Sequence record: PV261925.1
Reading direction: 5' to 3' (one strand)
DNA length: 64,000 nucleotides
Under the pieces are notes generated by a model, which made no database searches, was not told the origin of the DNA, and saw nothing but the letters and a program-made list of their open reading frames with translations. Both the position numbers and the translations under genes were made by a program. Positions 7,396 through 51,506 of the stretch are shown piece after piece (position 1 is the stretch's first letter; each line of letters begins with the position of its first letter).

Positions 7396-8384
7396 ATCTT
7401 TTTCCAGGTTGTAAATTTGAGTTTTGCTTGTAAACCACTATATGTGTTTGATTCTACTATCTCTTGAACTTTATGTCCAGATAGAACCATGTCATTTATG
7501 TCTTTGTCTCTGATGGTGGAGGGCCAGATGACAACTCGTTCTCCCCGTTCAATACATCGTTCAATTCGAGCAACAATTTCTTTATTACGGGGTTCATTAT
7601 CGTATACAAAAACTTTGTCGCTTCCTTCAAGATCACTAACTTCACCATCACTACCACACAAAGCCACACTATTGTTGATGAAAGTGCTGTCGAAGGGTCC
7701 TTCGACCACATAGACTGGTAGTTTCTTATCGATTGTGTCAATCCCGTAAACTTTGGGTGCATCGTCGTCCAACATGATGGTTAAGTATTTAATAGGGTTT
7801 GTAGACAGTGCTCTACCCTGCACACCTATCAGTTTGTTATCCCTGACAAGAGGTATCACAATCCTCTGTTCACCATACTTTGGGTTATCAAATGACCCTG
7901 GTTTGATACTATTGACAAACGACTGAAAGTTCTCGGCATAGTAATACTCACCCTTGAAGATTGCTCTATCCATGAGGTATCTCTTAGAAATACCTACACT
8001 GAATGCATCAGGTAAATCAATCTTAATCTTTTCTTTGAAGACGGGTTTAGATGTCTCTAACTTCTTAAAGATGTCTTCTGGATTTTCTGTCTGAAAATTC
8101 TTACCACTCTTCCCATCCTTAAACTTTTCGAACACATACTCCTTGTGTGTCTCTGGGTCAAGTTCCTTCAAGAAACTATTGAAGGAAATACTGATACCAC
8201 AATTGTGACACTTGTAGTTGGTATTGTTCTTTACGCGATACAGATACCCTCGTGCCTTATTCTTCTGCTTCTGACTGTCACCACAGATAGGACAACGGAA
8301 GTTGTACAGATGTGGTTTTACCTTTTTGAACTTTGGTAGTCGTGAGGAAATCAGATTGATGTACTTTACATCAATAAAATCCAT
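7392..8384 (-). CDS. gp61: DNA primase (T4 gp61-like)
   Basis: Zn-binding CPICGDS...CHNC, TOPRIM VEGPFDS, DNEPRN, KDINDM. Confidence 0.95.
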   Translation of the reverse strand: MDFIDVKYINLISSRLPKFKKVKPHLYNFRCPICGDSQKQKNKARGYLYRVKNNTNYKCHNCGISISFNSFLKELDPETHKEYVFEKFKDGKSGKNFQTENPEDIFKKLETSKPVFKEKIKIDLPDAFSVGISKRYLMDRAIFKGEYYYAENFQSFVNSIKPGSFDNPKYGEQRIVIPLVRDNKLIGVQGRALSTNPIKYLTIMLDDDAPKVYGIDTIDKKLPVYVVEGPFDSTFINNSVALCGSDGEVSDLEGSDKVFVYDNEPRNKEIVARIERCIERGERVVIWPSTIRDKDINDMVLSGHKVQEIVESNTYSGLQAKLKFTTWKKI

Positions 8385-8385
8385 A

Positions 8386-8769
8386 TCACCTAGTATAACT
8401 CGTTTCTATTGTAGAGACTTCTGTGGGTCCTGTCAAGAGTTGTGGGAAGGCTGTCATGACCCTCATACCTATCGATAGGACAGCAAGACCACCTACAGCC
8501 ATCCAGACCCTCTTCTCTAGTCCACGTATTCGTTGCAATACGATGTCATGATCCCCGTCCATTTTATCACGGAGTTTGTCAATTTTAGCAAAGAGTACTG
8601 TGTCGATTTCTTCTTGTTTCGATATACGTTCTTCATGTACTGCAAGCATCCTACTTACAGTAGTATTTACTTCAGATAATTTTTCGATTGCTGCGTCGAT
8701 ACGGAGGACAATTGGTTTTAAGTCCTCTATCTTTTGTTCTAGTACTGCAATCTTAATTTGATTGTCCAT
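8386..8769 (-). CDS. coiled-coil protein with C-terminal transmembrane segment
   Basis: Heptad-rich body followed by VWMAVGGLAVLSIGM. Confidence 0.75.
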   Translation of the reverse strand: MDNQIKIAVLEQKIEDLKPIVLRIDAAIEKLSEVNTTVSRMLAVHEERISKQEEIDTVLFAKIDKLRDKMDGDHDIVLQRIRGLEKRVWMAVGGLAVLSIGMRVMTAFPQLLTGPTEVSTIETSYTR

Positions 8770-9061
8770 GGGGCTTAAAATATGGATTGAATTCCAACGC
8801 CTTTTTCTTAGCCTTCTTATCCTTTCTCTTCTGTTGCCTGTCCATCAGGTCTTTAATCGCCTTCTTCACATACTTATTACGACCATCTAATTTAAGGGTG
8901 GGATCATAACCAGCAGTAGGACCAGCAGCAGGGGAGGAGCCACTAAATCCACCAGATCCCCCAGGAGGATTTGCCACCATGCCTTCCTCATTGACACTGA
9001 ACTCATTATACATTGCTGTACGAAATGCATCTACAAACCTGTCAATCTTGTCCTTATCCAT
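8753..9061 (-). CDS. hypothetical protein
   Basis: 102-aa ORF in the coupled gene train; Gly/Pro linker and basic C-terminus. Confidence 0.7.
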   Translation of the reverse strand: MDKDKIDRFVDAFRTAMYNEFSVNEEGMVANPPGGSGGFSGSSPAAGPTAGYDPTLKLDGRNKYVKKAIKDLMDRQQKRKDKKAKKKALEFNPYFKPHGQSN

Positions 9062-9434
9062 TAGAAATACCTTTTAGAGCATCTAAGCATGTTTGATCTA
9101 ATTCAATATCATGTATGTAACTTTTTGGATAGTCTGGCAACTTATCCAAGAACACAACAAATGTTTTTATTGGAGACCACAAACTCTTATCGATTTTGTA
9201 GAACAACATTGGTGTTGTTGCGTCACCAAAAATATTATACAGAATGATGAAATGATTTATTAAAAGATGAACCTTTAAATCACCACTTGTCTTATACCGT
9301 TTAAGGAGTCTTTTGATGTATCTGAATCGACTCAGATCTTTATCAAAATCCTCCCTTGTAACGGCTTGGGGATTCTCATAATTTTTAATCGCGAAGATGA
9401 GGAAGTTCTCCTCATTCAATTCATTAAAAAGCAT
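9054..9434 (-). CDS. conserved T4-like hypothetical protein
   Basis: MLFNELNEENF...FAIKNY.NP...F.DL.RFRYIKRLL...NH.I.LYN.FG pattern, common in T4-like phages. Confidence 0.8.
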   Translation of the reverse strand: MLFNELNEENFLIFAIKNYENPQAVTREDFDKDLSRFRYIKRLLKRYKTSGDLKVHLLINHFIILYNIFGDATTPMLFYKIDKSLWSPIKTFVVFLDKLPDYPKSYIHDIELDQTCLDALKGISNG

Positions 9435-9437
9435 TTA

Positions 9438-9965
9438 TCATTCAGCAGTAGGGTAGTCAATACCACCAGTTGTAATACCAGACATAGCAACCAGAGTCTC
9501 TTTCTTGACTCTCAGATTACCAAGGTTGTCAAGATAGGTTGTAACACCAACCCAACCTTCATGAGTTACAGAGTACTCAGTGTTTGAGGTGATACCTTCA
9601 CCTTGAGTGTTTACACCATATACCAGTGAGTCAGGTGTACCATATGATGCTTCACTGTAAACAGAATTGAGTACAGATGACTTAGGAAGTTGAGATACGG
9701 TGAAGTTTGCACCAGCAATAGCTGCACCACTCAGACCCATGGTTGAACCGATGGTCAGTGATTCAGAGTTAGCGATACTTACAATAACAGCATCACCATA
9801 ATATGTGTTTCCACTACCTCTAGTACCAAAGCGAATTACATCACCCTCTGCACAACCACCATCAATACCAAATGATGTGCCAGAACCAGTGACAACTCCT
9901 GTAGAGTAGTTCAGGGAAACTGTACCTGCAGATCCCACATTGTCGTTGTTTCCCCAAAGTGCCAT
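9438..9965 (-). CDS. probable virion structural protein (start reassigned to MALWG)
   Basis: MALWG N-terminus and HEGWV...ETLVAM C-terminus; TATAAATA late promoter upstream. Confidence 0.7.
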   Translation of the reverse strand: MALWGNNDNVGSAGTVSLNYSTGVVTGSGTSFGIDGGCAEGDVIRFGTRGSGNTYYGDAVIVSIANSESLTIGSTMGLSGAAIAGANFTVSQLPKSSVLNSVYSEASYGTPDSLVYGVNTQGEGITSNTEYSVTHEGWVGVTTYLDNLGNLRVKKETLVAMSGITTGGIDYPTAE

Positions 9966-9999
9966 GTCTTGTGCCCTTGTAAAGTTACTTTCTTTCAAA

Positions 10000-10007
10000 T
10001 ATTTATA
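10000..10007 (-). promoter_or_regulatory. T4-type late promoter TATAAATA
   Basis: Perfect match 35 nt upstream of the ATG at 9965; gp55 is encoded in the window. Confidence 0.7.
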
Positions 10008-10033
10008 AAAAAATAGGAGACAAGAATGTCTCC
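10007..10033 (-). terminator. intrinsic terminator
   Basis: GGAGACA-TTCT-TGTCTCC followed by a TATTTTTT tract. Confidence 0.7.
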
Positions 10034-10039
10034 GTTATA

Positions 10040-10240
10040 TCATTCTTCTCTGGTTTTAATTGCCTTTGCAACTACCTCAAGAAGTTCATCATCCATATCT
10101 GTCTTAGTAAGTTTAACTGCTTTACCAAGAATTACCAAACAAACATCAATCAGTTTCTCACCCAGTTCTTCATTCTCAGGAATCTTTGCAACCGCATCAG
10201 AAATAATCTTTGATGCAAATGGAAGTAAAAATGATAGCAT
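10040..10240 (-). CDS. 66-aa hypothetical protein
   Basis: Amphipathic ORF ending in TxxDDxL, like small phage membrane-associated proteins. Confidence 0.75.
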   Translation of the reverse strand: MLSFLLPFASKIISDAVAKIPENEELGEKLIDVCLVILGKAVKLTKTDMDDELLEVVAKAIKTREE

Positions 10241-10271
10241 GGTGAATACCTAGTACTATCTTATATAGGAA

Positions 10272-11081
10272 TCAGTCTCTTGCTGAGGTATGTTTTGACA
10301 TAATTTTTGTTTCTCTTTCTTGAGCTTTAGTCCGACCGTACTTAGACTGAAGTTTATTACGGAAGGAACGTTGTGCTGCTTGACGATCACCCTCAGAAGG
10401 TTTTGATCCACGTTCTTGTTTAGGTTGACGTGACCCTGGATTTTCTTTGCGGAACTTGTCAACTATTCCCTTATACTTTCCTTCCTTTTCATACCCAGCA
10501 ACCTTCTTACCCTGTGCTTCTACTTCTGGATTTCTTTCTTCCTTGGCAAGTTTAGTTGCAGTAGCATACATTACAGACTTGGCATCATCACCATATCTCT
10601 TTTCAAAACCACCCTTGGACTTCTTCATGCCCTTTACAATTCTTTCTTTCTCCTCTTTCTCATCAGAAGAAAGGGTTCTTTCCTGAACTTGTGTTGGAGA
10701 CTGGGCACTCTTCTTTCTCTCCTTCGCAATCTTCATATCAGTCTTTGCAATATCGGCTTCTTTCTTAGCCCTTCTCATCATGAGTGCTTCAAGATTCTCT
10801 TCTACCTTACCAGGCTTTCTACCTTCTTTCTTGTCCTTCTCATCTTGCATACGTTTGAGATCTTCAGCACTTAACTTCTCGTCAAGTTCTGTGACTTCAA
10901 GAATTGTTGCACCAATCTCGTCGAATGCTTCTGTCATCTGTGGGTTGATGACGATCTTGTTCTTTACTTCTTTCGTATCAATCTTTCTCTCAGACTTCTT
11001 ATCAGTCTTTGGTTCTGAGGAAGGAACATCTACAACCTCTCTGAGATCCTCTCTCCAATTAGAAAATTTATTTCTCTTCAT
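10272..11081 (-). CDS. highly charged hypothetical protein, possible internal head protein
   Basis: K/E-rich low-complexity sequence, FSNWREDL N-terminus; CTAAATA at 11114-11120 upstream. Confidence 0.75.
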   Translation of the reverse strand: MKRNKFSNWREDLREVVDVPSSEPKTDKKSERKIDTKEVKNKIVINPQMTEAFDEIGATILEVTELDEKLSAEDLKRMQDEKDKKEGRKPGKVEENLEALMMRRAKKEADIAKTDMKIAKERKKSAQSPTQVQERTLSSDEKEEKERIVKGMKKSKGGFEKRYGDDAKSVMYATATKLAKEERNPEVEAQGKKVAGYEKEGKYKGIVDKFRKENPGSRQPKQERGSKPSEGDRQAAQRSFRNKLQSKYGRTKAQERETKIMSKHTSARD

Positions 11082-11090
11082 GTTACTAGA

Positions 11091-12389
11091 TTAGATACTC
11101 TTTTTCTTGTAGTTATTTAGAAATTCTCTGAAATTTGATTTAGGTCCTTTGTATGGCTTACCACCGTCTTGAAGGTTTGTCTTATCTCCCTTTTCAAATC
11201 CTGGTGTCATGTCAGCAACATGTTTGAAGTATCCTGTCGTGCCAGTCAGAGTGTTTGGTTTCTTAGGAAGTCTCATCTTACGATCCATCTTGACTTCATT
11301 ATACTCACGAAGATCACGAATCCAAGACTTGAACATGATATCTTCTTCGGTAACACAGATCAGATAATTAGTTCCTCTACGAACAATCTTACCGACCAAT
11401 CCAGTGTTTAAGTTTTCTACCAATTGATTAATCTTAAAGATCTTACCAGTCACATAGTTTTCACGAAGATTCTTCCAGTCAAACTTGGGAGCAATCTGCC
11501 AAAGTGACCAACCCTCCTCAACATTCATTGCCTTACGAACTGTAGTCATGATTGACTTAGCAGTTGCGTCGTCAATGTTATCAGGAACACCTGATCTGAA
11601 TGTATCAAAGTCACCTTCTGCTGCAGCCTTTCTCATCTTAGATGCAGACATACCAGCTACACCTTCTGCATCATCCTCTCTCTGACCTGCTGAAATAGTC
11701 TCAATCTCATCGAAATCATACAGGTCACCATTGTATTTCTGAGCCAGGTTGTCAAACTCACCAACTCTATCAGAACCTACAACGATCTTGATGTTTGAGT
11801 ATCCCTCACCTGAAGCAATCTTAAGTGCATCAAAGATAGTCTTCACACTCTCATCATTGATGATTGATTCCTCATGATCGGGGAACATCTTCTTCATCAA
11901 ATCAGTCTTCTGACCTGGTTCTAATGGATTCTTCTTGGGGTCATTTGATCTTGAAGGGTAGATTCTAAGATCACCATCACCAGCAACTTGAGCAGAAGCA
12001 TCAAGAAGTTTCTTATGACCAGTGGTAGGGGGATTAAATCTACCAAACACTAGTGTCAGTGTCTCACCAGTCTTATCTCCACCCGTTACTTCGTTTCCTT
12101 CTTCCTCTCCACCACTCTGTCTCTTGCCACCTTCTACTTCAGGTTGTGCAGTTCTCTTCTGTGTTTGCTGTTCTGGAGTTTTGTATTGTGCAGCCTTACC
12201 TGTCTCCTGTCTTTCTGCACCACCCTTTCTATCAGTGAATCTCAGTTCACCAGCTTCTGTTCTAGCAACAATATTACCAGCCTTATCAACCCAGTTTCCC
12301 TGACCATCACCAGTCAGACCAAGCTGCTTCGCCTTAGTGGAAGCCTTAGTCTGTCTTGCTTCAGAAAAGAAATTTAAGAAACTCTTCAT
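11091..12389 (-). CDS. cytidylyltransferase-like (HxGH) nucleotidyltransferase
   Basis: FGRFNPPTTGHKKL, KKNPL, VVGSDR, MSASKMRKAA; start at MKSFLNFFSE (or 12398). Confidence 0.85.
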   Translation of the reverse strand: MKSFLNFFSEARQTKASTKAKQLGLTGDGQGNWVDKAGNIVARTEAGELRFTDRKGGAERQETGKAAQYKTPEQQTQKRTAQPEVEGGKRQSGGEEEGNEVTGGDKTGETLTLVFGRFNPPTTGHKKLLDASAQVAGDGDLRIYPSRSNDPKKNPLEPGQKTDLMKKMFPDHEESIINDESVKTIFDALKIASGEGYSNIKIVVGSDRVGEFDNLAQKYNGDLYDFDEIETISAGQREDDAEGVAGMSASKMRKAAAEGDFDTFRSGVPDNIDDATAKSIMTTVRKAMNVEEGWSLWQIAPKFDWKNLRENYVTGKIFKINQLVENLNTGLVGKIVRRGTNYLICVTEEDIMFKSWIRDLREYNEVKMDRKMRLPKKPNTLTGTTGYFKHVADMTPGFEKGDKTNLQDGGKPYKGPKSNFREFLNNYKKKSI

Positions 12390-12416
12390 TTCTATCAATA
12401 CCTTATATTTTATTTA

Positions 12417-14480
12417 TTAGAAGAACCTGGTGTTCTTATTATACTTGGAAATAAATGACTTTCCATAAGAAGTGGACACTCTTTTGACTGTCTCATACTC
12501 CTCCTTGAAGACCTTACCAGCCTTCTTATCGTCAAGAATATCCTGATCGATAAGACCAAGTTCAATTAACTTTTTGTTGACAGCCTTTGGTTCTCTTGCT
12601 TCATTTCCTGCAGAAATAGCTTCTGCCCAACCATCCATATATCTCTGTCTATCTGCTGGTTTTGCATTAGCCATGGACTGTAGAAACCCACGGTATACAT
12701 TTTCCTGAAGTGCTACTGTTCTTCTACCTGATTTATCAGTGATACCTCTACTTAATCCTGTTGCTTTAAGTAATTGTTTACCAAGTTTCGACTTCATACC
12801 ATTTGCTTTCTTCTTATCCTTTGGATCGGTTGCAACTTTACGGAACTCGTCTCTTAGACTTGTGTATCTACCATCGTCTTCACCGAAGTGTTCTTGTAAG
12901 ATTTCTCTAGTAACTCCGTCACCAAGACCCTTACCACCCTCACCAAGAAGTGTCTTTACAAGTTGATCACCTACATCACCGATTTGGTTTTGTTTCTCAA
13001 ACAACTTCTCGATACCACCAAAATCTTCCTCTGATTTATCTTTATGAACATCAACTTCTCTCTCAAAGAAGTCTTTCATAGACATATCAACTTTCTTCTG
13101 GTTGATATTAGAGTTGATCAGGGTAAAGTTATCATCATTTTCTCTCTGTTCCCACTCTTCTTTACCTGGTGCACCACCATCTTTATTGTTAAAACCACGA
13201 ACGTGTTCTAAGTCCATGGCTTGAAGATCAAGAGGAAGACCAGTATATGCATCACGACCACCTTGTTCAAGGTAGATACGCCACATCAACTTTGCTCTAT
13301 CCTTATTATTAGCTGCACCTCGTCTTACTGTCCCATCTTCATTTCTACCAAGATAGTGCATGTCCTTATGTGCCTTATCATCTGACACATACTTATCATT
13401 GGTAACCTGACCCTTACCACTCAAAGATTTCTTGAATGCATCTGGAAGAATATCAAAGGAAGCATCGATAAACTCATCTGATACTTTGTTAGATCTTACC
13501 GAATCAACAAACTTTTTGATCTGTTCTGGTGATCCATCACCATATCCCTCCATCAAACGATCACGGTTTGCCATGAGGTTTTGAACATCGGCATATCCTA
13601 GGTTATTCTTACCTGCACCAGCATTCACTCTTCCTTCAAACGTCTTTGCATGAGCCATTGACTGAAGGAAGGATCTCTTGTCAGTTGCACTTGGAATAGT
13701 TGACAAAGATTCTTGGAACTTTGCGAACTTCTTCTCCATCATCTTTCTCTGACGATCAGCCAGAGTCTTCATCATGGTCTCAGCTTCTTTAGTGAACTCC
13801 TCATATTCACTATCAAATGCATCATCATCATTAGCATAATCAATCTCATCCTGAGTTTCTGCTACAGCATCATCAAGAGTTTTATAATCTTCAACATCTA
13901 TCTGTTCTGCCTCGGCATCATTCAGTGCCTGGATCTCGGCATTTCTCTTTTCTGCATCAGCTGCTGATTGTGCTTCAATATCAGCCAGTGCAGCAGCTTC
14001 TGCTTCTTTCTCCGTCTTTAATTGTGCAATGATATCTTGTGCTTGTTGTTTGATCTGATTCTTTCTACTTGGGCTCATGGCATCACCACGACCACGCATC
14101 AATCCTTTCTCTACTTCTTTTACATCACCATTCTCAACGGACGTAGAAGTAGGACCACCAGGAACAACTCTACCCATCTGGTCAGTAACAGATGCAGTGG
14201 CTTGTTGTTCTGGTTTTGGTGCGTCCTTTCTAAAATCAGAAAGGGTTTTTGGTTCTTGGGCTTGTTGTGGTTCTTGTGATTTAGGTTGTTCAGGTTGAGT
14301 CAGTTGAACAAGTTTAGTCTGTCCCTTCCCAACAACCTCACTCTTATGTGTGACCTGACCAGTCTTAGGATCTTTCCACTTTCCATAACCAGCATATTCC
14401 AGACCCATCTCACGGGCATCATCGGCTGCACCCTCCTTGAGGAAGGTGTCAGCCTTTTTCAGATATTTAAAAACGTCCAT
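12417..14480 (-). CDS. 687-aa protein with an HNH endonuclease motif
   Basis: QGGRDAYTGLPL...DLEHV...DNFTLINSNINQKK at about 13090-13280; otherwise coiled-coil and low-complexity. Confidence 0.7.
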   Translation of the reverse strand: MDVFKYLKKADTFLKEGAADDAREMGLEYAGYGKWKDPKTGQVTHKSEVVGKGQTKLVQLTQPEQPKSQEPQQAQEPKTLSDFRKDAPKPEQQATASVTDQMGRVVPGGPTSTSVENGDVKEVEKGLMRGRGDAMSPSRKNQIKQQAQDIIAQLKTEKEAEAAALADIEAQSAADAEKRNAEIQALNDAEAEQIDVEDYKTLDDAVAETQDEIDYANDDDAFDSEYEEFTKEAETMMKTLADRQRKMMEKKFAKFQESLSTIPSATDKRSFLQSMAHAKTFEGRVNAGAGKNNLGYADVQNLMANRDRLMEGYGDGSPEQIKKFVDSVRSNKVSDEFIDASFDILPDAFKKSLSGKGQVTNDKYVSDDKAHKDMHYLGRNEDGTVRRGAANNKDRAKLMWRIYLEQGGRDAYTGLPLDLQAMDLEHVRGFNNKDGGAPGKEEWEQRENDDNFTLINSNINQKKVDMSMKDFFEREVDVHKDKSEEDFGGIEKLFEKQNQIGDVGDQLVKTLLGEGGKGLGDGVTREILQEHFGEDDGRYTSLRDEFRKVATDPKDKKKANGMKSKLGKQLLKATGLSRGITDKSGRRTVALQENVYRGFLQSMANAKPADRQRYMDGWAEAISAGNEAREPKAVNKKLIELGLIDQDILDDKKAGKVFKEEYETVKRVSTSYGKSFISKYNKNTRFF

Positions 14481-14491
14481 CAGACCCTATA

Positions 14492-15709
14492 TCAGTCTTC
14501 CCAACTATTTACCTTCTCTTCAATCGCCTTCAGTTCAGCTTCAGAGAACTTAACTGATTCCTCAACACCTTTACCAGCCTTATACAGTGGTTTACCAGTC
14601 TTAACATTCTTCATACCAGCTTTGTAGTTCTGATATGCTTTGGTGTTACCCTTCTTGTCAGCCATGGTAACTTCATACTCCTCTTTCTTCGTCAGATTCG
14701 CTTTACGATACTCAAGGTCAGCACGAGTACCTCTATCCATCTTACCCTGAGACTTGGGTTTGGTCTTGCCACCTACATCAGGTTGCATACCAGGGTTTGC
14801 TGCCTTAACTCTGCGACCGTGAGTGTATTCAGCACCAGATTGCTTGGAGTCACCAGACACCATCTTGCCACCCTGTGAACGGGAGTCGGCATACTCTTTG
14901 TCGGACTGACCGTGTTTGCCCTTATAGACCTCTTCAACTTTCTCTTTCTTCTTACCCATTGCCTTACCAATGGCCTTACGGCGCTTCATCAGATACTCGT
15001 CTGAAGAATCCTCGTCACCATCATTATCTACATCACCATCTTCCTTACCTACGGGGTCAAGTTTCTTCTCATAGATAGATGCATATGCATCACCCCAACC
15101 CTTACGGATTTGTGATACTTCTTCGAAGTGTGGGTTCTTCATCTTAGAACCCATCTTCTCCATATCCTTACGAGCCTTCTCGTTGTTCTCCTGCCTCTTC
15201 TTCATATCTGTCTCCAGATATGACTTGTCAGCCTTCTCAACCAACTGAAGGAGAAGAGTCTTGACATTCAGTGACTCTTGTGCAACCAACTGACCATGAG
15301 TTCTTTGAACTCTTTTCTCTTGGTTGAATCTTGCTGACCAAGACTCCTGAAGTCTCTTATTATATCTGTACTTCCCAAACTCCTCTAGAGCAATTGTAGA
15401 TGCCTTAGAATCAATTACATCAAATGCTTTGTTCAGGGACTCACACAGTCTGTCAATCTTTGCCTGTCTACCAGCAATGCTCGACTCAACGAACATCTCA
15501 CTGAAGATTGTATGTGCAGAATCTACTGAGTAACCTTTCTGGAACATCTCTTCCAGAACACTCTCTACAATTTCATCAAGATCAGTGTCAGTCAAAGCAG
15601 AGAGATTCATCTCAGAGATCTCATCCCTTACAGAAGTCAATTCTTCTTTTGCTTCGGTGTTATGGACAGCAGCATATGCTTCCATAAAGTTACGCATTGA
15701 TGAAGACAT
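14492..15709 (-). CDS. charged modular hypothetical protein, possible internal head protein
   Basis: 405 aa with AYxxV/IY repeats and DGDVDNDGDEDSSD motif; ATAAATA at 15738-15744 upstream. Confidence 0.75.
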   Translation of the reverse strand: MSSSMRNFMEAYAAVHNTEAKEELTSVRDEISEMNLSALTDTDLDEIVESVLEEMFQKGYSVDSAHTIFSEMFVESSIAGRQAKIDRLCESLNKAFDVIDSKASTIALEEFGKYRYNKRLQESWSARFNQEKRVQRTHGQLVAQESLNVKTLLLQLVEKADKSYLETDMKKRQENNEKARKDMEKMGSKMKNPHFEEVSQIRKGWGDAYASIYEKKLDPVGKEDGDVDNDGDEDSSDEYLMKRRKAIGKAMGKKKEKVEEVYKGKHGQSDKEYADSRSQGGKMVSGDSKQSGAEYTHGRRVKAANPGMQPDVGGKTKPKSQGKMDRGTRADLEYRKANLTKKEEYEVTMADKKGNTKAYQNYKAGMKNVKTGKPLYKAGKGVEESVKFSEAELKAIEEKVNSWED

Positions 15710-15720
15710 CTTTTTACAAA

Positions 15721-15930
15721 TTACTTTTTCTTATCTTTATTTATGTCTTCGAGGTATTCTCTTTCGTTTTCATAGATCGAAGAGGGGTTCATATAAAGAT
15801 GAATCCCCTCTTGAATACCTGGTATCAACCACTCGTCTAGATTTTTACAATTGTCCCAATTGACTGGTTGAATACAATTCATCACTACCACAGACCAAAA
15901 GGCTGTGGCATAATTAATAAACGTTGTCAT
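15721..15930 (-). CDS. hypothetical protein with hydrophobic N-terminus
   Basis: Start reassigned to MTTFINY, giving an ATGA overlap with the upstream ORF. Confidence 0.7.
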   Translation of the reverse strand: MTTFINYATAFWSVVVMNCIQPVNWDNCKNLDEWLIPGIQEGIHLYMNPSSIYENEREYLEDINKDKKK

Positions 15931-16091
15931 AATTCCTGTTTCCAAACAAGTTGATGAGCCATTTTGTCCCTCAACCCATTGATACGTTTTTCATCAAAAT
16001 GAGCAAAGTTAGGATACTTCTCAACCTTTTTATAATAGTGAAGTGCATTGAGAATGATTGTGTAATCCTCCATGCTCAAATCAAACTTCAC
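15927..16091 (-). CDS. 54-aa hypothetical protein (not in the ORF track)
   Basis: GTG start: MKFDLSMEDYTIILNALHYYKKVEKYPNFAHFDEKRINGLRDKMAHQLVWKQEL*; 4-nt overlaps at both ends. Confidence 0.65.
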   Translation of the reverse strand: MKFDLSMEDYTIILNALHYYKKVEKYPNFAHFDEKRINGLRDKMAHQLVWKQEL

Positions 16092-16354
16092 AGTTTACCA
16101 CCAACAAAACCACTGTTTACAACTCTTGTGTATTGATCAAGAGTACCATCCTGTTCACACTGAAGATGCCATCTTGTCATGTAGACAACACCGTCTTTCT
16201 CTAGTCCTGTCAACATTTTACGACCTTCTTTGGTCATAGTACTGTAAAGACCAAAACGTGTCTTCCAAACATAAAATGTGTCATCAATAACTTCAGCATC
16301 TTCTGGAAGATCAAAAAATGCTTCAAGTTTGTTTACTGTAGATGTCTCAATCAT
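16088..16354 (-). CDS. hypothetical protein
   Basis: 88-aa ORF coupled to its neighbours. Confidence 0.7.
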   Translation of the reverse strand: MIETSTVNKLEAFFDLPEDAEVIDDTFYVWKTRFGLYSTMTKEGRKMLTGLEKDGVVYMTRWHLQCEQDGTLDQYTRVVNSGFVGGKL

Positions 16355-16589
16355 TAAACATACCTCTGTCTTTCATAAACTGTAGAGTCTCTTTCATATT
16401 TCCAATATGAGTATAACCCAATGCAACCTGGGGATAAGTTGCTTCTTTACCAAACTCAGACTCAAACGCACGTTGTGTGAAATGATTATTCAGTTGATAC
16501 TCCAGGATTTCAATCTGAAGATTCTTGAGGAGAGATGTGATTCTCTCACACTCCTGATTACCATTAGTGTAAACTACAGCCTTAGTCAC
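16347..16589 (-). CDS. glutaredoxin/thioredoxin-fold protein lacking CxxC
   Basis: AVVYTNGNQEC...ATYPQV...HIGNMKE matches the Grx TxPQV/IGG region; GTG start at 16589. Confidence 0.7.
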   Translation of the reverse strand: MTKAVVYTNGNQECERITSLLKNLQIEILEYQLNNHFTQRAFESEFGKEATYPQVALGYTHIGNMKETLQFMKDRGMFND

Positions 16590-44490: not shown

Positions 44491-44982
44491 CTATTTATCA
44501 AGTAATCTCCATCTATATCCCCCTGCAGACTTTCTCTTTCCACTACATGCCATACTTATCATACTGACAGAGACATTAGCAAAATCTGCTGCTTCCTGAA
44601 GACTGTCAAATACTTCTTCTGTATCAATGTTTACAACTGACTTGGCAACAGCTTTAGACAAGATTCTCTTTTTCTCCTCTGAACAAGGAACACCATAAGA
44701 CCCACCATCTCCACCGAGTGTAGCATTATACTCTGGTTTAATTTTATCAATCCAATATATCTCTCTAATTCCCTGGTCTTCTTTACTACACTCTTCTAAT
44801 ACAGCCCAATCGAAGGAATCTCTTCCATATTTGATAAGTGCATTGGGGAATGGGTGATTATATCTCATATTGTTTGCATACCACCAATGGGTGCTCTCTC
44901 GTTGTCTTAAACGTTTATAAGTTGTACGACCGATATACTTTTTTCCATTTACTTTATTGGTCACCTGATAGATATATGCCAT
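44491..44982 (-). CDS. GIY-YIG (Seg-like) putative homing endonuclease with NUMOD-type C-terminus
   Basis: AYIYQVTN.VNGKKYIGRT, REIYWI, YNATLGG, FDSLQEAA...AGGYRW. Confidence 0.88.
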   Translation of the reverse strand: MAYIYQVTNKVNGKKYIGRTTYKRLRQRESTHWWYANNMRYNHPFPNALIKYGRDSFDWAVLEECSKEDQGIREIYWIDKIKPEYNATLGGDGGSYGVPCSEEKKRILSKAVAKSVVNIDTEEVFDSLQEAADFANVSVSMISMACSGKRKSAGGYRWRLLDK

Positions 44983-45073: not shown

Positions 45074-46504
45074 CTACATAAGATTTTTGACTGCAACACG
45101 TCTGTAGTAACGGTTGGAGTTAACTCTGAGTCTGCCAAGACCTTGGTCAATACCTTCAGCGAATGGGTTAGCAACGAGACCGTAACGGGTCTTGAAGCCG
45201 ATTTTTGGCTGGAAGGTGTTCTCACCGACGGCACGAACCATCTGGAGAGGAACATAAGGACAATAGAACAGACCAGCGTCATAAGGTGAAGAACCCTTAT
45301 AACCGACGACATAGTACTGGTTACCACCGTTGGTTGCAGCGTTAGCAGCAGACAGGTTAGCAGAATATGGGTCGATGTAGACGCGGAACTTACCGTTGAT
45401 GGTACCAGCGAAGGTGTTGCCGGTGTCGTCAACGTTCAGGTTAGCGTTGAGTGCTGGGGTGTAGTCGAGGATACCAGCCATGGTCAGTGCGGAAGCAACG
45501 TCTGCGGAACACAGAATCATGTTGCCCTTGCCACGACGAGTTCTTTGAGCAATCGCGTTAGCGTCTCTCTCGATCTGGAACAGAAGACCCTTGAACTTCT
45601 CAACAGACCAACGACCGTTGGAGTCAACGTCGAGGTCAAATACACCAGCAGTTGCAGTGTTAGAAACGGCACCTTGCTCAGCAGTCTTATAGATGGTTCT
45701 GATGACTTCGCGGTTGATTTCAGCAAGAATCTCGGTTGAGAGAATGTTTGCCAACTCAGCCTCAGCATTCAGACCATGGATTGCCTTGAGGTCTTGTGCC
45801 AGTTCCAAGGAGTACTCAGCCTTGAGTGCTCTTGACTTAGCGGTTACAGTGACTTTCTCGATCGAGAATGCCATCTGGTTGAAGTGATCGCCAGTACCTG
45901 AACCCAGGTTCTCAGCGTCACCAGTTACCATACCCTGGCCTACGTTGTAGCCAGTGGATGATGCAGAACCAACAGGGTTCAGAACTGATGGGTTAGTGCC
46001 AGACTGTGAGGTTGTACCCAGACCAGCATTAGCATCAGACATGCCTGCGGTCAGGTTGAAGCCGTCATCCTGACCAGAGAATGCGGTATCGACTTCGTTG
46101 TAGAAGGTCTCGGAGCCAGACTGGTTCTCGTAGCGAGATCTCATTGCGAAGATCAGGCCAGTAGGACCGTTCATTGGCTGAACGCCTGCGAGGTCATATG
46201 CGACCAGGTTAGGCATTGCGCGTCTGATCAGGGAGATCAGAACAGGGTCGAAACCAGCGGTAGGACCAGCGGCAGGTGAGTCAGCACCAAAACCACCAGA
46301 TGCACCAGCAGCGTTAGCAGCGTTGGTTGGGGTTTCCATCAGGTTGATACCTGACTGGAATGCTTGCTCCTCACGGAGGAATTTTTCTTGGTTTTCGAGC
46401 AGGACTGCGGTTACAGCTCTTCTGTGAGTGTCCTTGATGGGATCAAGACCTTCATAGTCGAGAAGTGGACTCCACTTTTCCTGCAGATGTTCGGATTGAA
46501 ACAT
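45074..46504 (-). CDS. gp23: major capsid protein (T4 gp23-like)
   Basis: QPMNGPTGLIFAMR, KSRALKAEYSLELAQDLKAIHG, FQPKIGFKTRYG. Confidence 0.98.
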   Translation of the reverse strand: MFQSEHLQEKWSPLLDYEGLDPIKDTHRRAVTAVLLENQEKFLREEQAFQSGINLMETPTNAANAAGASGGFGADSPAAGPTAGFDPVLISLIRRAMPNLVAYDLAGVQPMNGPTGLIFAMRSRYENQSGSETFYNEVDTAFSGQDDGFNLTAGMSDANAGLGTTSQSGTNPSVLNPVGSASSTGYNVGQGMVTGDAENLGSGTGDHFNQMAFSIEKVTVTAKSRALKAEYSLELAQDLKAIHGLNAEAELANILSTEILAEINREVIRTIYKTAEQGAVSNTATAGVFDLDVDSNGRWSVEKFKGLLFQIERDANAIAQRTRRGKGNMILCSADVASALTMAGILDYTPALNANLNVDDTGNTFAGTINGKFRVYIDPYSANLSAANAATNGGNQYYVVGYKGSSPYDAGLFYCPYVPLQMVRAVGENTFQPKIGFKTRYGLVANPFAEGIDQGLGRLRVNSNRYYRRVAVKNLM

Positions 46505-46545: not shown

Positions 46546-47607
46546 TCACTTTTTGAATGCACCAAGTGCTCTCATGTACTGTTCCATACCTGTAGAGGTA
46601 GGAGCAGGGGTTGAATCTACACTTTCAGAGATTGTCTGAGGTGCTTCAGATTTCGCGGAAGGTGCCTTGGAGAAGTATGACTCCTTCAGGGTCTCCAGCT
46701 TTTCACGATATTCTTCTTCACTTTCAAACTCTACACTTTCAGCAAGTGAAGCGAGCTTCTCTTTCTGGGTCTCAGCAAGACCTTCAGAGACAACTGAAAG
46801 AACGATGTCTGCGGTGGACTCAGCGAGTCTCTTATTCAGACCAATGTTCTTCTCAATCTGCTCATTGAGTTTAGTCTCCATATCATCAAGTTTTTCTACC
46901 ATGCTCTCAAGTACATCATATTTTTCTTCAGGGATAGTTACATAATGTTCTTCAAAAAGACCCTTCATGCCAGACAGGAAGGATTCAGTCATTTCGGTCT
47001 TGAGACCATGTTCGATAGCCAACTCATTCTCGGTCATCCACTCTTCGCAGACATATTCGAGATATGCGTCAACTCTCTCGGTGAGTTCACCCTTAAGGGC
47101 TTGTCTCTCCTCATCCAGACGCTCGGCATACTGGACTTCCAGGGATTCCTGGATTTCTTTGATTTTTGAGGTTAATGCAGCTTCAAAGATGACACGTGCC
47201 TTTTCTTTGAATTCTTCGGAGAGCTCTTCACCACCGAGGAGTGCATTTACGTCCTCTTCGATGTCAACAGTCTCTTCGGTAACTTCTTCGGATTCGGATA
47301 CAATCTCTTCCTCTTCGAGGACTTCCTCTTCGGTTTCGATTTCTTCCTTAGCCATTTTCTTCATTGGATCAGCAGCTTTTGCACCCTTATTAACTACATC
47401 CTTGACAGTAGCGATCTTAGGCTCTCTGAGCTTTGCAGAATCGTTGTCAGGCTTGTAGTTCTCAGGGGTAGGACCACCGAGATCTTCGTAGGAAGTTGAC
47501 AGGCCTTCGCCTGGGCTGGAAAGCTTAGGCATACCTTCAGCAGGTTTAGCGTTCGCGTTCACAGCAGTTTTAGATTGCTCCATTTCTTGTAAATCTCCAC
47601 GAGACAT
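46546..47607 (-). CDS. gp22: prohead core scaffold (T4 gp22-like)
   Basis: Acidic coiled coil; IFEAAL, YLEYV..EW...N, F.EHY; gene order. Confidence 0.92.
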   Translation of the reverse strand: MSRGDLQEMEQSKTAVNANAKPAEGMPKLSSPGEGLSTSYEDLGGPTPENYKPDNDSAKLREPKIATVKDVVNKGAKAADPMKKMAKEEIETEEEVLEEEEIVSESEEVTEETVDIEEDVNALLGGEELSEEFKEKARVIFEAALTSKIKEIQESLEVQYAERLDEERQALKGELTERVDAYLEYVCEEWMTENELAIEHGLKTEMTESFLSGMKGLFEEHYVTIPEEKYDVLESMVEKLDDMETKLNEQIEKNIGLNKRLAESTADIVLSVVSEGLAETQKEKLASLAESVEFESEEEYREKLETLKESYFSKAPSAKSEAPQTISESVDSTPAPTSTGMEQYMRALGAFKK

Positions 47608-47644
47608 TTGAAGTTACTCCGATTAACCTTTTTTAATCTATATT

Positions 47645-47652
47645 TATTTATA
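47645..47652 (-). promoter_or_regulatory. T4-type late promoter TATAAATA (tandem with ATAAATA at 47641-47647)
   Basis: Perfect match upstream of gp22/gp23. Confidence 0.8.
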
Positions 47653-47674: not shown

Positions 47675-48325
47675 TCAAAGATTGTTTAAAAAGTTATTGA
47701 ACAGATCAAGTTTCTTCTCATCAAGTTGACCTTGAGTTACAAGAGTGTTGATCTGCTTGTAGGTTTTCTTGGCGGCCTGTTCTCTAAGGATACCACCATC
47801 CCAAACCCACTCTTTTCCTTCCATAATACCTTCAACGAAAGCATCTGGTGCAGAAGGATCAGCAACGATATCAGCAGCAGTTGCTAACATGAAGTCGTCA
47901 CCAACAATGTTTACACCTTCTCTGGTTTGCTTGAGTGACCCAATACCTCTACTAGAAACACCCAATTTAACTCCTTCTCCGATGAGTGACTTCGCAATGT
48001 TACCCATTGGTGTTGATAAGATTTTTGCTTTACCAATGAAATTATTTCCGTCTTCTTTGAGTGAAATAATTTTGTGACTGACGCGATCAAGATTAACAGT
48101 CGGGCCGTCTGGGTGTCCGAGTTCTCCAAGAGCCCTCCCAGAATTAATATGGTTTTCTGTGTATCTTTGGACTTCCTTTCTCAGGCCTTCCATTTGATAC
48201 ATTCTGCCATTACGATTACAGATGTTACCCTGAAGGAAGATACCCTCAATGTACATATGTTTCTTACCGCCCTTCTCTTCGACGATAAAATCAACTGACT
48301 CGATTTCTTCTCTGATTAGTTTCAT
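47675..48325 (-). CDS. gp21: prohead protease (T4 gp21-like)
   Basis: NRNGRMY, GELGHP, GVSSRGIGS, DIVADPSAPDA. Confidence 0.96.
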   Translation of the reverse strand: MKLIREEIESVDFIVEEKGGKKHMYIEGIFLQGNICNRNGRMYQMEGLRKEVQRYTENHINSGRALGELGHPDGPTVNLDRVSHKIISLKEDGNNFIGKAKILSTPMGNIAKSLIGEGVKLGVSSRGIGSLKQTREGVNIVGDDFMLATAADIVADPSAPDAFVEGIMEGKEWVWDGGILREQAAKKTYKQINTLVTQGQLDEKKLDLFNNFLNNL

Positions 48326-48879: not shown

Positions 48880-48910
48880 TATGTTTCAATAGTTCTATAA
48901 TACTTATTTA

Positions 48911-49129
48911 TTATTCTTCGGTCTCTTCTTCAGCTTCACCATAAGAAGCTTCAGTTTCGATCTCTTCTTCTGCCTCAACTTCAGGTGCATCAAAGATGGA
49001 TGCTGCTACGTTGGGACGGTTTGCTTCAATCTTTTCTGCACTTTTAGCAAAAAGGATATCCTTGATTTTATCACTAATTTGTGATGAAGACTCGTCGGGA
49101 CTGACGAGCATATCCATAAGTTCGTCCAT
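48911..49129 (-). CDS. small acidic prohead core protein (gp67/gp68 position)
   Basis: Position after the portal gene; acidic tail. Confidence 0.65.
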   Translation of the reverse strand: MDELMDMLVSPDESSSQISDKIKDILFAKSAEKIEANRPNVAASIFDAPEVEAEEEIETEASYGEAEEETEE

Positions 49130-49155: not shown

Positions 49156-50838
49156 TTAGATTTCACCACCAGGAGGATTCTTAGTTGTCCCAGGAGCCTC
49201 TGGATCTTTAGGTGAAGTTGGTGCCTGCATTGGGTCAATTGGTGCACCACCTGCAGGAGGCATACCAGGTGCTGGTGGCATACCTGTCATTGGATCAACC
49301 ATAGCATTAGGATCAGGAATTACACCATTTTCAATTTCCTTCTCAATCAATTCATCCTGTTCAATAATCTCTTCATCAGTCTGACGGAGAATATTTCTTC
49401 TTACATAATCCTGTGAGTAATACTTACCAACATAAGGTTCTGCAAGAGCAGCAAGGTTCAGTCTTTCAGTAGTGAGTTCTGCATTCTTGAGTTCTGCAAA
49501 ATGATTGTCATACAGGAAGTCATACTGAATATGATCTGCCATATACTCCCAATCTTCAGGAGTGACAATATTCTTCAGAATCAATTGTGTTCTCAACATG
49601 TCACTGAACATTGCTGAGAATCTCTTTCTCATTCTACCAACAAACTTGGAGAACTTGATTTCATCTCTCAAGATTTCAGAAGAACGACCCATTGAGAAAC
49701 CAGTGTCACCTTCGATTCTAGTCTCAGGAACATTCAGAGCTCTGTAAAGTTTTCTCTGGAAGTAGTTAATATCAGTAATTTCACCAAGGTTTTGACCACC
49801 AGGAAGTGTAGTAATCTCAGTACCACGACCACCTTCTCTTCTAGGAAGCCAGAAGTCTTCCATCATGGACATAAACTTCTTGTCATCACGCATCTCACCA
49901 GTGTTTGCGTCATAGACCATCTTGTTTCTATAACGCATCATGACATCACGAAGGTATTGTTCTGCCTTTACCTTAGGAAGATTGCCAACGTCAATGTAGA
50001 AAATTCTACGTTCTGGTGCTCTTGAAAGTCTGTAGATAACCAATGAATCCTCAATCATCATCAACTGATTGAGTGGTTTGATTGCCTTATGCATCCAGGA
50101 CAATGTGAGTCCTTTGTTTCTATCTACCAAACCAGAAGTACAATAGGTGACAGAATCACGGGTCATCTTGATACCCTTTTGTGGATTCCCACCATAACCA
50201 GCACGGGATGTTCCCATGTCTGGTGTGTACATGAAGAACTCTTCTACCTCTGGGAAGTTAAATGCAAGATTGTTTGATGCACCAAAGTCATCTCTTGCCT
50301 GTTGAAGACTATCGTTACCTTGTTTCTTTAACTTACGGACATATCTAATCTTAGATGCGTCAATATATCTGAGTTCTTGAATACCTTCTTGAGGATTCTT
50401 TTGGTCGATGACCTTGTTATAGTAGAGTCTTCCGTCAATATACCAGTTACGGAAAATCTCATGTGCCTTCTTATCAAAGTCAAGAAGTTCGAGAATATAA
50501 CTAAACTCTTCTCTTACAATCTTTTTGATTTTATCACTTGCATTCAGATTGGACAGTTCAATCTTTACAGGTGAATCGTTTGTATCAGATACAATTGCTT
50601 CGTTTACAATATCTTCAATCGCACTATCACACTCTGGATAGAGTGCCATCTGTCTATATCTTCTGATGAGATCGGTCTCATTTTTGTAGAGACCCTCAAT
50701 ATCTAAGTTATAACTACCAAAAAACCCACTACTAGCGAAGTTCTCAGATCCATCTTGATTAGAGGGTGGAATCGGAGAGACTACGCCAGAAGGGGTCTTT
50801 TCGCTATCTTCAATTGAAAAACCAAATAATCTGGCCAT
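49156..50838 (-). CDS. gp20: portal protein (T4 gp20-like)
   Basis: WYIDGR, YRLSRAPERRIFYIDVGNLPK, MEDFWLPRREGGRGTEI. Confidence 0.98.
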   Translation of the reverse strand: MARLFGFSIEDSEKTPSGVVSPIPPSNQDGSENFASSGFFGSYNLDIEGLYKNETDLIRRYRQMALYPECDSAIEDIVNEAIVSDTNDSPVKIELSNLNASDKIKKIVREEFSYILELLDFDKKAHEIFRNWYIDGRLYYNKVIDQKNPQEGIQELRYIDASKIRYVRKLKKQGNDSLQQARDDFGASNNLAFNFPEVEEFFMYTPDMGTSRAGYGGNPQKGIKMTRDSVTYCTSGLVDRNKGLTLSWMHKAIKPLNQLMMIEDSLVIYRLSRAPERRIFYIDVGNLPKVKAEQYLRDVMMRYRNKMVYDANTGEMRDDKKFMSMMEDFWLPRREGGRGTEITTLPGGQNLGEITDINYFQRKLYRALNVPETRIEGDTGFSMGRSSEILRDEIKFSKFVGRMRKRFSAMFSDMLRTQLILKNIVTPEDWEYMADHIQYDFLYDNHFAELKNAELTTERLNLAALAEPYVGKYYSQDYVRRNILRQTDEEIIEQDELIEKEIENGVIPDPNAMVDPMTGMPPAPGMPPAGGAPIDPMQAPTSPKDPEAPGTTKNPPGGEI

Positions 50839-50873
50839 TATGATTAAACTAGACTGTCTTGTCTAGTTATTTA

Positions 50874-51506
50874 TCACTCAATCAGAACTTCACCAGCGTT
50901 AGAACCAGTAGACTGCAGTGAGTTGCCGATAGTGAAATACTGAATATCGAATTCAACATCGAAAGTTTCGAGTTGATCACCGTCGTCATAGCTCAGTGCA
51001 ATCTCACTAATTCTGGTTGGGAAGATGTCATAGAACTTGTAAGTTCTCAGGACTGCTGAGTTACCACCTTCATTAGTGGTGGCAAATCTCTCAGCACCTC
51101 TACCCAGTTGAGTGACATATGCATCAGTCATGTAAGATGATGGGTTGGTAACACCAGTTGCATCATCCAGTTTACTGATGGTATTTGCCCATCTTTCAAA
51201 CGCAGTTCTGAGTTGGAAGTCCTCATCATTGATGATTGTAACTGTCCATGCATCAAACGTTCTGTCACCAGCAACCTTCAGATTTCTACCTCTGAAAGGA
51301 ACTTGGAAAGAGCTGGTGTTTGAAGCAGGAAGTTGTGCAGCCTTACAGAGGAACTTGAAAGTTCCATTTTCTGACTGATCACCACTACCCCATGCATCAG
51401 CAATTGCTGATGGGAAGGTAGGAATCGAGACTTCGAATAGGTTGGGGCGGGCCCCACCGCCCGCCAGTCTTGATTTAAATTGTGATAGGGTTTTTGTTTC
51501 TGCCAT
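50874..51506 (-). CDS. gp19: tail tube protein (T4 gp19-like)
   Basis: GGARPNLF, FRGR.LKVAGDRTF..WT.T..ND, DIFP. Confidence 0.95.
   Translation of the reverse strand: MAETKTLSQFKSRLAGGGARPNLFEVSIPTFPSAIADAWGSGDQSENGTFKFLCKAAQLPASNTSSFQVPFRGRNLKVAGDRTFDAWTVTIINDEDFQLRTAFERWANTISKLDDATGVTNPSSYMTDAYVTQLGRGAERFATTNEGGNSAVLRTYKFYDIFPTRISEIALSYDDGDQLETFDVEFDIQYFTIGNSLQSTGSNAGEVLIE

Follow-up and report, generated by a model that had tools for sequence, protein, structure and literature searches.

The 64,000-nucleotide stretch of sequence record PV261925.1 considered here (hereafter the window) contains at 12417..14480, on its minus strand, a complete coding sequence that begins with ATG, ends with a stop codon at 12417-12419 and encodes a protein of 687 amino acids with the N-terminus MDVFKYLKKADTFLKEG. 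Over its 2,064 nt the gene matches Synechococcus phage RB11-B with 100% identity and phages S-B05 and S-H68 with 99.9-100%, all three of them T4-like cyanomyoviruses with Synechococcus MW02 and LTWRED as isolation hosts. The encoded protein is the same as RB11-B XYR95870.1 (100% identity), and the gene is labelled 'hypothetical protein' in each of the three genomes. The protein bears a nuclease domain of the HNH type behind an N-terminal leader. Drawing on sequence, structural models and analogy with T4, we hold with moderate confidence that it is made late, directed by its leader into the phage head, packaged there and ejected into the next host as a nuclease of a T4-like cyanomyovirus. The minus strand carries all genes of the region. 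Among public sequencing runs, the locus was found in metagenomes only, with contigs ending exactly at the gene boundary, position 12419; scraps present in three RNA libraries have no bearing on transcription or its timing.

The HNH assignment rests on the alignment of the protein family. A sequence-only reading of the window had pointed to a Cas9-type HNH motif at 13090-13280, with the histidine and both asparagines retained, no pairs of zinc-binding cysteines and no recognisable RuvC motif, and this description is borne out throughout. The catalytic motif occupies residues 403-463 (nt 13092-13274). HMMER, run exhaustively against 1.8 billion cluster representatives, yielded 147 relatives of the protein, and conservation was assessed in an alignment of 65 diverse ones, with identities down to ~20%. 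H426, N451 and N460 are the sole invariant columns of this alignment, while E425, Q406, G414, R395 and K463 are conserved at 90% or above. The catalytic codons lie on the minus strand at 13206-13208 (E425), 13203-13205 (H426), 13128-13130 (N451) and 13101-13103 (N460). Compared with the PDB, the 65-member profile matches the HNH domains of Cas9 at E values of 1.2e-4 (8pj9, St3Cas9) and 1.2e-3 (6o56, the HNH domain of SpCas9). In this alignment E425-H426 falls on the D-H of Cas9, N451 and N460 on the asparagines of DNKVL and NRGK, and K463 on the lysine of the latter motif; the Cas9 counterparts of E425, H426, N451 and N460 are D839, H840, N854 and N863. The Pfam family HNH_4 (PF13395) is matched at E ≤ 0.01 by 10 of the 65 members, at best with 9e-6, and the sole member with a displayed score reaches 21.3 bits, slightly below the 22-bit cut-off. 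One distant member matches Cas9 hidden Markov models of PADLOC (7.5e-9) and TIGR01865 (7.6e-8), with the HNH segment alone covered and scores far under the full-length cut-offs. The 687-residue protein contains no cysteine. Scans of the protein and its 65 relatives against Pfam, NCBIfam and PADLOC revealed no RuvC motif or family, no Rfam family that could represent a guide RNA was found in 8000-21000, and 9000-17000 holds no array-like direct repeats of the CRISPR kind. Judged by profiles and models, the domain is a genuine Cas9/HNH_4-type HNH domain with an intact catalytic set and predicted activity, and the protein is kin to the HNH domain of Cas9 and IscB rather than an RNA-guided nuclease.

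The predicted fold agrees with the profile. The AlphaFold2 model of residues 230-687, computed from a 71-sequence alignment, has a mean predicted local distance difference test score (pLDDT) of 93.5 and a predicted template modelling score of 0.86. Searched whole, it retrieved Cas9 HNH domains as the best PDB matches, at a weak Foldseek E of 0.64, and nothing informative among the AFDB clusters. The weakness of these matches is due to the helical domains, which dilute the search: folded alone, the HNH domain gives clear matches. The model of residues 329-484 (pLDDT 88.4) comprises a beta hairpin and a helix in the beta-beta-alpha-metal arrangement. Comparison of the fold with known HNH families, which the sequence-only reading had proposed as a check, is led by Cas9, whose HNH domains make up the top 24 Foldseek matches (best E 3.7e-3, probability 1.0) and the top seven VIA matches (Z 5.6-6.7); PtuB, GVE2, Gme and T4 endonuclease VII (Z 4.3) follow in VIA.

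Around the nuclease domain the protein is built of segments that evolve in different ways. Residues 1-16 (14433..14480) form a predicted capsid-targeting propeptide in which F4 and L7 are followed by F-L-K-E16/G17, the predicted site of the gp21 protease (slashes mark known or predicted cleavage sites). Residues 17-60 (14301..14432) bear the leader motif A..A.E.GL.Y.G.G.W.DP.TG..., common to the adjacent cytidyltransferase. A fast-evolving linker of low complexity spans residues 61-260 (13701..14300) and is rich by composition in Q, P and S at 61-140 and in A, E and D at 141-260. Its second portion, residues 141-260, also abounds in Q and carries a net charge of -19, and residues 231-260 are modelled as a single long helix. 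Next comes a conserved helical subdomain with the motif GR.N.G.GKN.LG...YGDGSPE (residues 261-328, 13497..13700, pLDDT >90), which precedes the HNH domain proper (residues 329-484, 13029..13496, delimited by profile, Pfam and model). The protein ends in a conserved basic helical domain with the motifs GL.RG..D.SGRR, N.YRGF and GW..A (residues 485-687, 12420..13028, pLDDT mostly >90). All these segments are encoded on the minus strand. Residues 261-328 have no structural match other than small viral HNH proteins of the ESM Atlas, and residues 485-687 gave generic helical-bundle matches only in structure search and at most 0.46 in the atlas feature search; ESM Atlas feature searches with the N- and C-terminal parts returned meaningless scores of at most 0.63. 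The acidic residues 141-260 (13701-14057) directly precede the basic nuclease core, with a pI of 8.6, and E257, within F-Q-E-S, is invariant among close homologues. Going by composition and conservation, the acidic stretch might act as a DNA mimic that inhibits the protein itself, and a second protease site might lie at E257.

The leader of the HNH protein is shared with one neighbour. The motif G(L/Y)...G.G.W.D in the first 70 residues is found in two proteins of the window only, the HNH protein and the product of the adjacent CytT gene, a cytidyltransferase/NMNAT-like protein of 432 amino acids counted from its ATG (11091..12389, minus strand). The two N-termini match each other in BLASTP at E 9e-5, and positions 1-60 of phrog_3561, a profile built on the HNH family, match the N-terminus of CytT at 1.3e-14. 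A leader hidden Markov model compared with all open reading frames of ~50 loci finds the HNH and CytT families only. A kinase-like protein at another locus (L007) was taken for a further leader-bearing protein and rejected: its BLAST match is low-complexity sequence, and the leader model does not find it.

In CytT, the first residues of this leader closely resemble a T4 capsid-targeting sequence (CTS). Their consensus is M-K-S-F-(F/L)-x-F-(F/L/I)-x-E-A, with M1, K2, F4, F7, E10 and A11 invariant in 31 loci, and the version in the window reads MKSFLNFFSE/A. In the T4 CTS, positions 4 and 7 govern targeting and positions 8 and 10 processing (PMC9026906). The CytT leader agrees at all four positions with the leaders of internal proteins IPIII and IPII, which read MKTYQEFIAE/A in the T4 genome. 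The NMNAT protein of cyanophage S-SCSM1, detected in virions, likewise starts with MKSFLQFLKE/A and continues with the same GL...G.GW.D motif. Such an IPIII-like leader may explain why these enzymes recur in cyanophage virion proteomes, where cytidyltransferases have repeatedly been detected (PMC10665884). The leader of the HNH protein extends further, MDVFKYLKKADTFLKE/G; its residue 4 is aromatic and its residue 7 hydrophobic. The pattern [LIV]-x-E followed by a small or acidic residue is found at positions 13-25, mostly 16-17, in 37 of the 40 HNH leaders of the fetched loci, and more distant family members have the variants ...GFIAE/Q and ...SFITE/A. By analogy with T4, the HNH leader would bring about capsid targeting and be cleaved by gp21 after E16. 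T4-type head cargo presupposes a phage that encodes gp21 and gp22, and PHROG matches locate both in the window: a gp21-type head maturation protease, the predicted leader-processing enzyme, at 47675..48325 on the minus strand (E 7.6e-83) and the gp22 scaffold at 46546-47607 (E 1.5e-109). The gp23 capsid (45074-46504, E 2.4e-168) and gp20 portal (49156-50838, E 6.4e-221) genes lie beside them.

In other branches of the family, the T4-type leader is replaced by conserved N-termini of the forms L..EW.YR...G.PD..N..HL or ...GPEKWLSRSL (members P0127, P0129, P0131, P0133, P0136, P0144, P0147, P0153, P0159, P0163, P0172, P0176, P0205 and P0234). One genomic context of these proteins was seen (L005), with no annotated genes in it. 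The alternative N-termini may be targeting modules for other types of phage.

The HNH gene belongs to a conserved gene block. In a set of 40 IMG/VR loci, found with a 7-sequence alignment, and several isolate genomes, the conserved order is MazG, a variable insert, p405, HNH, a second variable insert, CytT, p269, p186, further genes and gp61 primase; the block p405-HNH-CytT-p269-p186 is kept in ~40 loci. The virion proteome of S-SCSM1 was determined by mass spectrometry (PMC9602691), and the S-SCSM1 annotation marks each of the syntenic homologues of p405, CytT (the NMNAT protein), p269 and p186 as a virion protein that was detected; the CytT orthologue is 50% identical to that of the window from residue 1. 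S-SCSM1 has no HNH gene at this position of the block. The RB11-B annotation calls the CytT gene 'tail fiber protein' and p405 'cytidyltransferase', and both labels are probably wrong. A sigma-70-like gene of ~230 codons, not present in the window, lies between HNH and CytT at L021, L027, L039, L046 and in ACG-2014f (L004 11071-11763).

The block is also marked by late-promoter motifs. The late promoter of cyanophages is NATAAATA, with the core ATAAATA (PMC2984593). This core occurs at 22 sites in the window against 10.9 expected, all on the coding (minus) strand, and none of 100 shuffles reaches 22. One site, 15738..15744 (minus strand), lies 29 nt upstream of the ATG of p405 (14492..15709, minus strand), the first gene of the operon, and a site precedes p405 in 35 of 35 loci. 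Since the gap between the stop of p405 and the start of the HNH gene is only 11 nt, the same motif probably drives both genes. A further site at 12411-12417, on the same strand, stands ahead of CytT. Across the loci the motif is found upstream of CytT in 30 of 36 cases, of p186 in 29 of 29 and of p269 in 22 of 29, and the HNH gene has a copy of its own in L002/L040 (S-CRM01), L006, L008 and L043. Other sites in the window, at 10000-10006, 47641-47651, 48905-48911 and 50868-50874, lie 22-44 nt upstream of structural or virion-block genes and provide a usable late-promoter map. Read from these motifs, the block is a late-gene island within a region of replication genes, and the HNH gene is probably expressed late. 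The suggestion of the sequence-only reading that the HNH protein is packaged in the head is strengthened by this late-promoter block with its virion-detected neighbour homologues, by the leader in common with CytT and by the presence of gp21.

The constancy of the leader contrasts with the variability of what follows it. Between members of the S-B05-like clade, identity is 79-97% in the core (residues 230-687) and 30-59% in the first 229 residues, a pattern that is reversed at larger distances. At the same locus of RN05-S, a close relative of RB11-B, stands an 859-residue protein whose first ~200 residues are ~70% identical to those of the window protein and whose body is a different HNH protein, matching Cas9d/IscB models. 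Two ACG-2014f isolates are 86% identical in residues 1-210, and their bodies share a single weak segment of 27% identity; both bodies are still HNH domains of the family, the divergent allele having D-H in place of E-H. The divergent protein, of 892 residues in isolate C9, seemed to be related by its leader only and thus to represent a true exchange of cargo, an interpretation dropped when the family hidden Markov model identified it as a very divergent HNH allele. In S-B43 (L003 8974-9537), the last 187 codons alone remain, 100% identical and adjoining baseplate genes on the opposite strand, which reflects either a rearrangement breakpoint or a permutation of the assembly. A tblastn search detected the HNH family in 9 of ~460 cytidyltransferase-bearing cyanophage records; divergent alleles are undercounted in this figure. 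In joining a constant leader to a nuclease body that diversifies and is dispensable, the gene resembles arms-race effectors and also the internal-protein locus of T4, which is polymorphic. In distant relatives, the HNH gene is followed by an 814-residue protein of unknown function (L006 145-4789), and at L007 (10001-14788) the HNH protein and a protein of the 814-residue type are fused into one of 1,595 residues; three N6/N4 methyltransferases and a cytidyltransferase lie downstream.

These observations can be joined into the following course of events. The gene would be transcribed late from the ATAAATA promoter ahead of p405. The two-part leader, a T4-type CTS followed by the ~45-residue motif in common with CytT, would bring the protein into the gp22 scaffolding core of the prohead, where the gp21 protease would cut off residues 1-16. 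The mature protein would remain in the head with the DNA and enter the next host by ejection, on the pattern of T4 Alt and IPI-III. Its working part would be the basic core of ~430 residues (~261-687), which contains the HNH domain with E425, H426, N451 and N460 and, flanking it, two helical domains that are not seen elsewhere. In the newly infected cell it would most likely nick or cut DNA in a metal-dependent manner, the target being host DNA or competing or defence DNA. The packaged genome might be spared owing to the DNA modifications of the phage, to the acidic linker acting as an autoinhibitor or to a requirement for a host cofactor.

Several observations weigh against this course of events. 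The 687-residue sequence itself has no match in Pfam (E ≤ 0.1), NCBIfam or PADLOC and no meaningful match among PDB sequences, and it was the family-level profiles alone that succeeded. The pattern [LIV]-x-E is short and frequent by chance, and the HNH leader is less like the T4 CTS than the CytT leader is. The gene is evidently dispensable, as S-B43 keeps only 187 residues of it. A protein of 75 kDa is large for passage through the tail, yet T4 Alt, of similar size, is ejected. The chief objection, and at the same time the most interesting point, concerns the restraint of a natural packaged nuclease: an engineered fusion of the CTS with a nuclease, once activated, destroys the packaged T4 DNA (PMC9026906). 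Because an active nuclease in the capsid can destroy the genome, a natural one needs a silencing mechanism that has to be assumed.

The virion evidence for the HNH protein is moreover indirect, which counts against packaging and in favour of the strongest competing explanation, that of an unpackaged late nuclease at work in the producer cell. There it could degrade host DNA late in infection or, like T4 endonuclease VII, debranch or trim replicated DNA ahead of packaging, and the leader would have another purpose. The HNH fold and the late promoter fit this explanation equally well, and the Z of 4.3 places T4 endonuclease VII itself among the weaker structural matches. We nonetheless consider it unlikely. 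The absence of the family from most cyanomyoviruses, as judged by tblastn with divergent alleles undercounted, and its truncation in S-B43 fit poorly with a role in essential DNA processing, the gene lies inside a block whose other members have homologues detected in virions and has its leader in common with one of them, and a housekeeping resolvase would not be expected to have its core exchanged between alleles while the leader stays constant.

A protective counterpart to a packaged nuclease has been sought in the DNA modification genes nearby. The cmo operon (17126..19748, minus strand) lies 2.6 kb upstream of the HNH gene and encodes CmoA (19053-19748), CmoY (18241-19056) and CmoX (17126-18244). 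In S-B43, these proteins were shown to make 5-carboxymethylcytosine and its glycine amide (PMC12783734), and the CmoA proteins of the window and S-B43 are 100% identical. At related loci, CmoY is replaced by a 465-residue homologue of glutamine-amidotransferase-type asparagine synthetase (e.g. L008 4780-6177), and it is absent from RN05-S, which implies that the final modifications differ. The co-occurrence of cmo and HNH genes, put forward as a check in the sequence-only reading, proves to hold in one direction. Among cyanophage isolates, cmoA is found in S-B05, RB11-B, S-B43, RN05-S and S-CRM01 only, and all five have the HNH gene or its remnant, although in S-CRM01, whose HNH homologue is g51, the two genes are 60 kb apart; in IMG/VR, the HNH gene lies downstream in 12 of the 12 cmoA loci long enough to show it. 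The converse association is weak, cmo genes being nearby in ~15 of 32 HNH loci, so that about half of the HNH loci have no local cmo genes. Other loci have N6/N4 methyltransferases or Dam adjoining the HNH gene. A methyltransferase is present in the block at 22 of 38 HNH loci and at none of five HNH-less cyanomyoviruses (Fisher p 0.02, for loci that are phylogenetically non-independent).

These associations are suggestive of a functional link between the nuclease and modification, and shared ancestry combined with a recombination hot spot explains them too. A further proposal is that the modification may shield the phage's own DNA from the nuclease. A tight coupling of the two is made less likely by the HNH loci without local cmo genes and by two other observations. 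S-B43, the phage in which CmoX was characterised, keeps nothing beyond the 187-residue HNH remnant, and near-identical cores occur beside different modification genes or none: those 95-97% identical to the core of the window sit with CmoY, with a different amide ligase or without cmo genes. The cmo operon is a possible self-protection partner of the nuclease. A broader and more speculative notion, which we rate as quite unlikely, is that leader-HNH genes are polymorphic virion-delivered nuclease effectors that form, with the phage's own DNA modifications, an 'inverted restriction-modification' system. If true, this would account for the insertion of three unrelated methyltransferase types beside the HNH gene and for the presence of this gene at every cmoA locus examined, and would supply the 'as yet undescribed' route of host-DNA degradation in cyanomyoviruses.

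The problem of a nuclease lying beside packaged DNA would vanish if the HNH fold bound DNA without cutting it, for instance in a pilot or genome-end virion protein that protects or guides DNA at ejection. The Glu that stands in place of the usual Asp before the catalytic His is compatible with such a silent domain. The E/D-H, N, N and K positions, on the other hand, are invariant or nearly so down to 20% identity, and the catalytic set is kept even in the divergent ACG-2014f allele with its D-H, as is typical of active enzymes; a non-cutting virion protein is in our estimate decidedly improbable. Least probable by far is that the protein is a free-standing homing endonuclease, or a terminase-associated HNH protein of the HK97 gp74 type, to which two kinds most phage HNH genes belong: its gene is syntenic in ~40 loci at 33-100% identity, large (600-900 residues in the family, 687 here), preceded by a late promoter and equipped with a leader, it neither interrupts nor adjoins a conserved target gene, its neighbours are p405 and CytT, with the portal gene ~35 kb off and no terminase gene adjacent, T4-like phages package by headful, and the typical small homing endonuclease of the window looks quite different. 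The same properties uphold the remark of the sequence-only reading that the protein is unlike a free-standing homing endonuclease. The small endonuclease in question is encoded by an open reading frame of 163 codons at 44491-44982 (minus strand; PHROG 314, 3.9e-27), just downstream of the major capsid gene and with ATAAATA ahead of it.

A large part of marine Synechococcus and Prochlorococcus falls victim to T4-like cyanophages, and the route by which these phages dispose of host DNA is unexplained. Cyanomyoviruses do not have the T4 genes denA, denB and ndd (PMC2984593). If the HNH protein does travel in the head and enter the host along with the genome, it would constitute a new kind of natural phage cargo. 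Our search of the searchable literature turned up no natural phage nuclease that is packaged in the head, which does not in itself prove novelty. Known phage cargo comprises an ADP-ribosyltransferase, small anti-restriction proteins, RNA polymerases and methyltransferase-helicases. Packaging of the HNH protein would moreover extend the capsid-targeting principle of T4 to an abundant group of marine viruses, and the several hundred proteins of PHROG 3561, so far without an assigned function, would gain one. The conserved leader with its swappable nuclease bodies would offer a natural test bed for the ways in which a packaged genome is protected from packaged enzymes, and the one-way association of the HNH gene with 5-carboxymethylcytosine yields a concrete hypothesis on what this modification protects against. 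The HNH identity of the protein was spotted by eye in the sequence, having been missed by routine annotation.

The predicted packaging follows the example of the T4 internal proteins and Alt. Features in common with T4 are a short leader at the N-terminus, aromatic at position 4, hydrophobic at position 7 and with a predicted cleavage site of the form hydrophobic-x-Glu, the presence of gp21, gp22 and gp23 genes in the phage, a putative late promoter, and polymorphism of the locus, where bodies vary behind a constant leader. The CytT leader MKSFLNFFSE/A is a near-copy of that of IPIII. Unlike in T4, the cargo would be an HNH nuclease of ~75 kDa and not a small basic protein or an ADP-ribosyltransferase, the HNH leader has an extra conserved motif of ~45 residues, the bodies have no sequence homology to those of the internal proteins, and packaging and cleavage are predictions here. 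With the HNH domains of Cas9 and IscB (PF13395), its best profile and structural matches, the domain has in common the order Y-L-x-Q-x-G-x-D-x-Y-T-G ... (D/E)-H ... N ... N-x-x-K and a beta-beta-alpha-metal fold without zinc-binding cysteines. It differs from them in the Glu that takes the place of Asp before the catalytic His and in being embedded in helical domains that are otherwise unmatched, and the protein, unlike Cas9 and IscB, has no RuvC domain, REC lobe or PAM-interacting domain and no CRISPR array or Rfam RNA nearby. Head-packaged proteins that act on DNA are also known from the Dar anti-restriction system of phage P1, in which DarB is a methyltransferase-helicase that protects the DNA of the phage; the protein described here is, in contrast, a predicted nuclease, and that of a T4-like and not a P1-like phage. 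A further parallel is artificial. In the CTS-nuclease fusions engineered in T4 by the Black laboratory, a CTS of 10 residues targets a nuclease into the head, where it is processed and still active (PMC9026906). Such fusions destroy the packaged genome when activated, whereas a natural counterpart must spare its own DNA.

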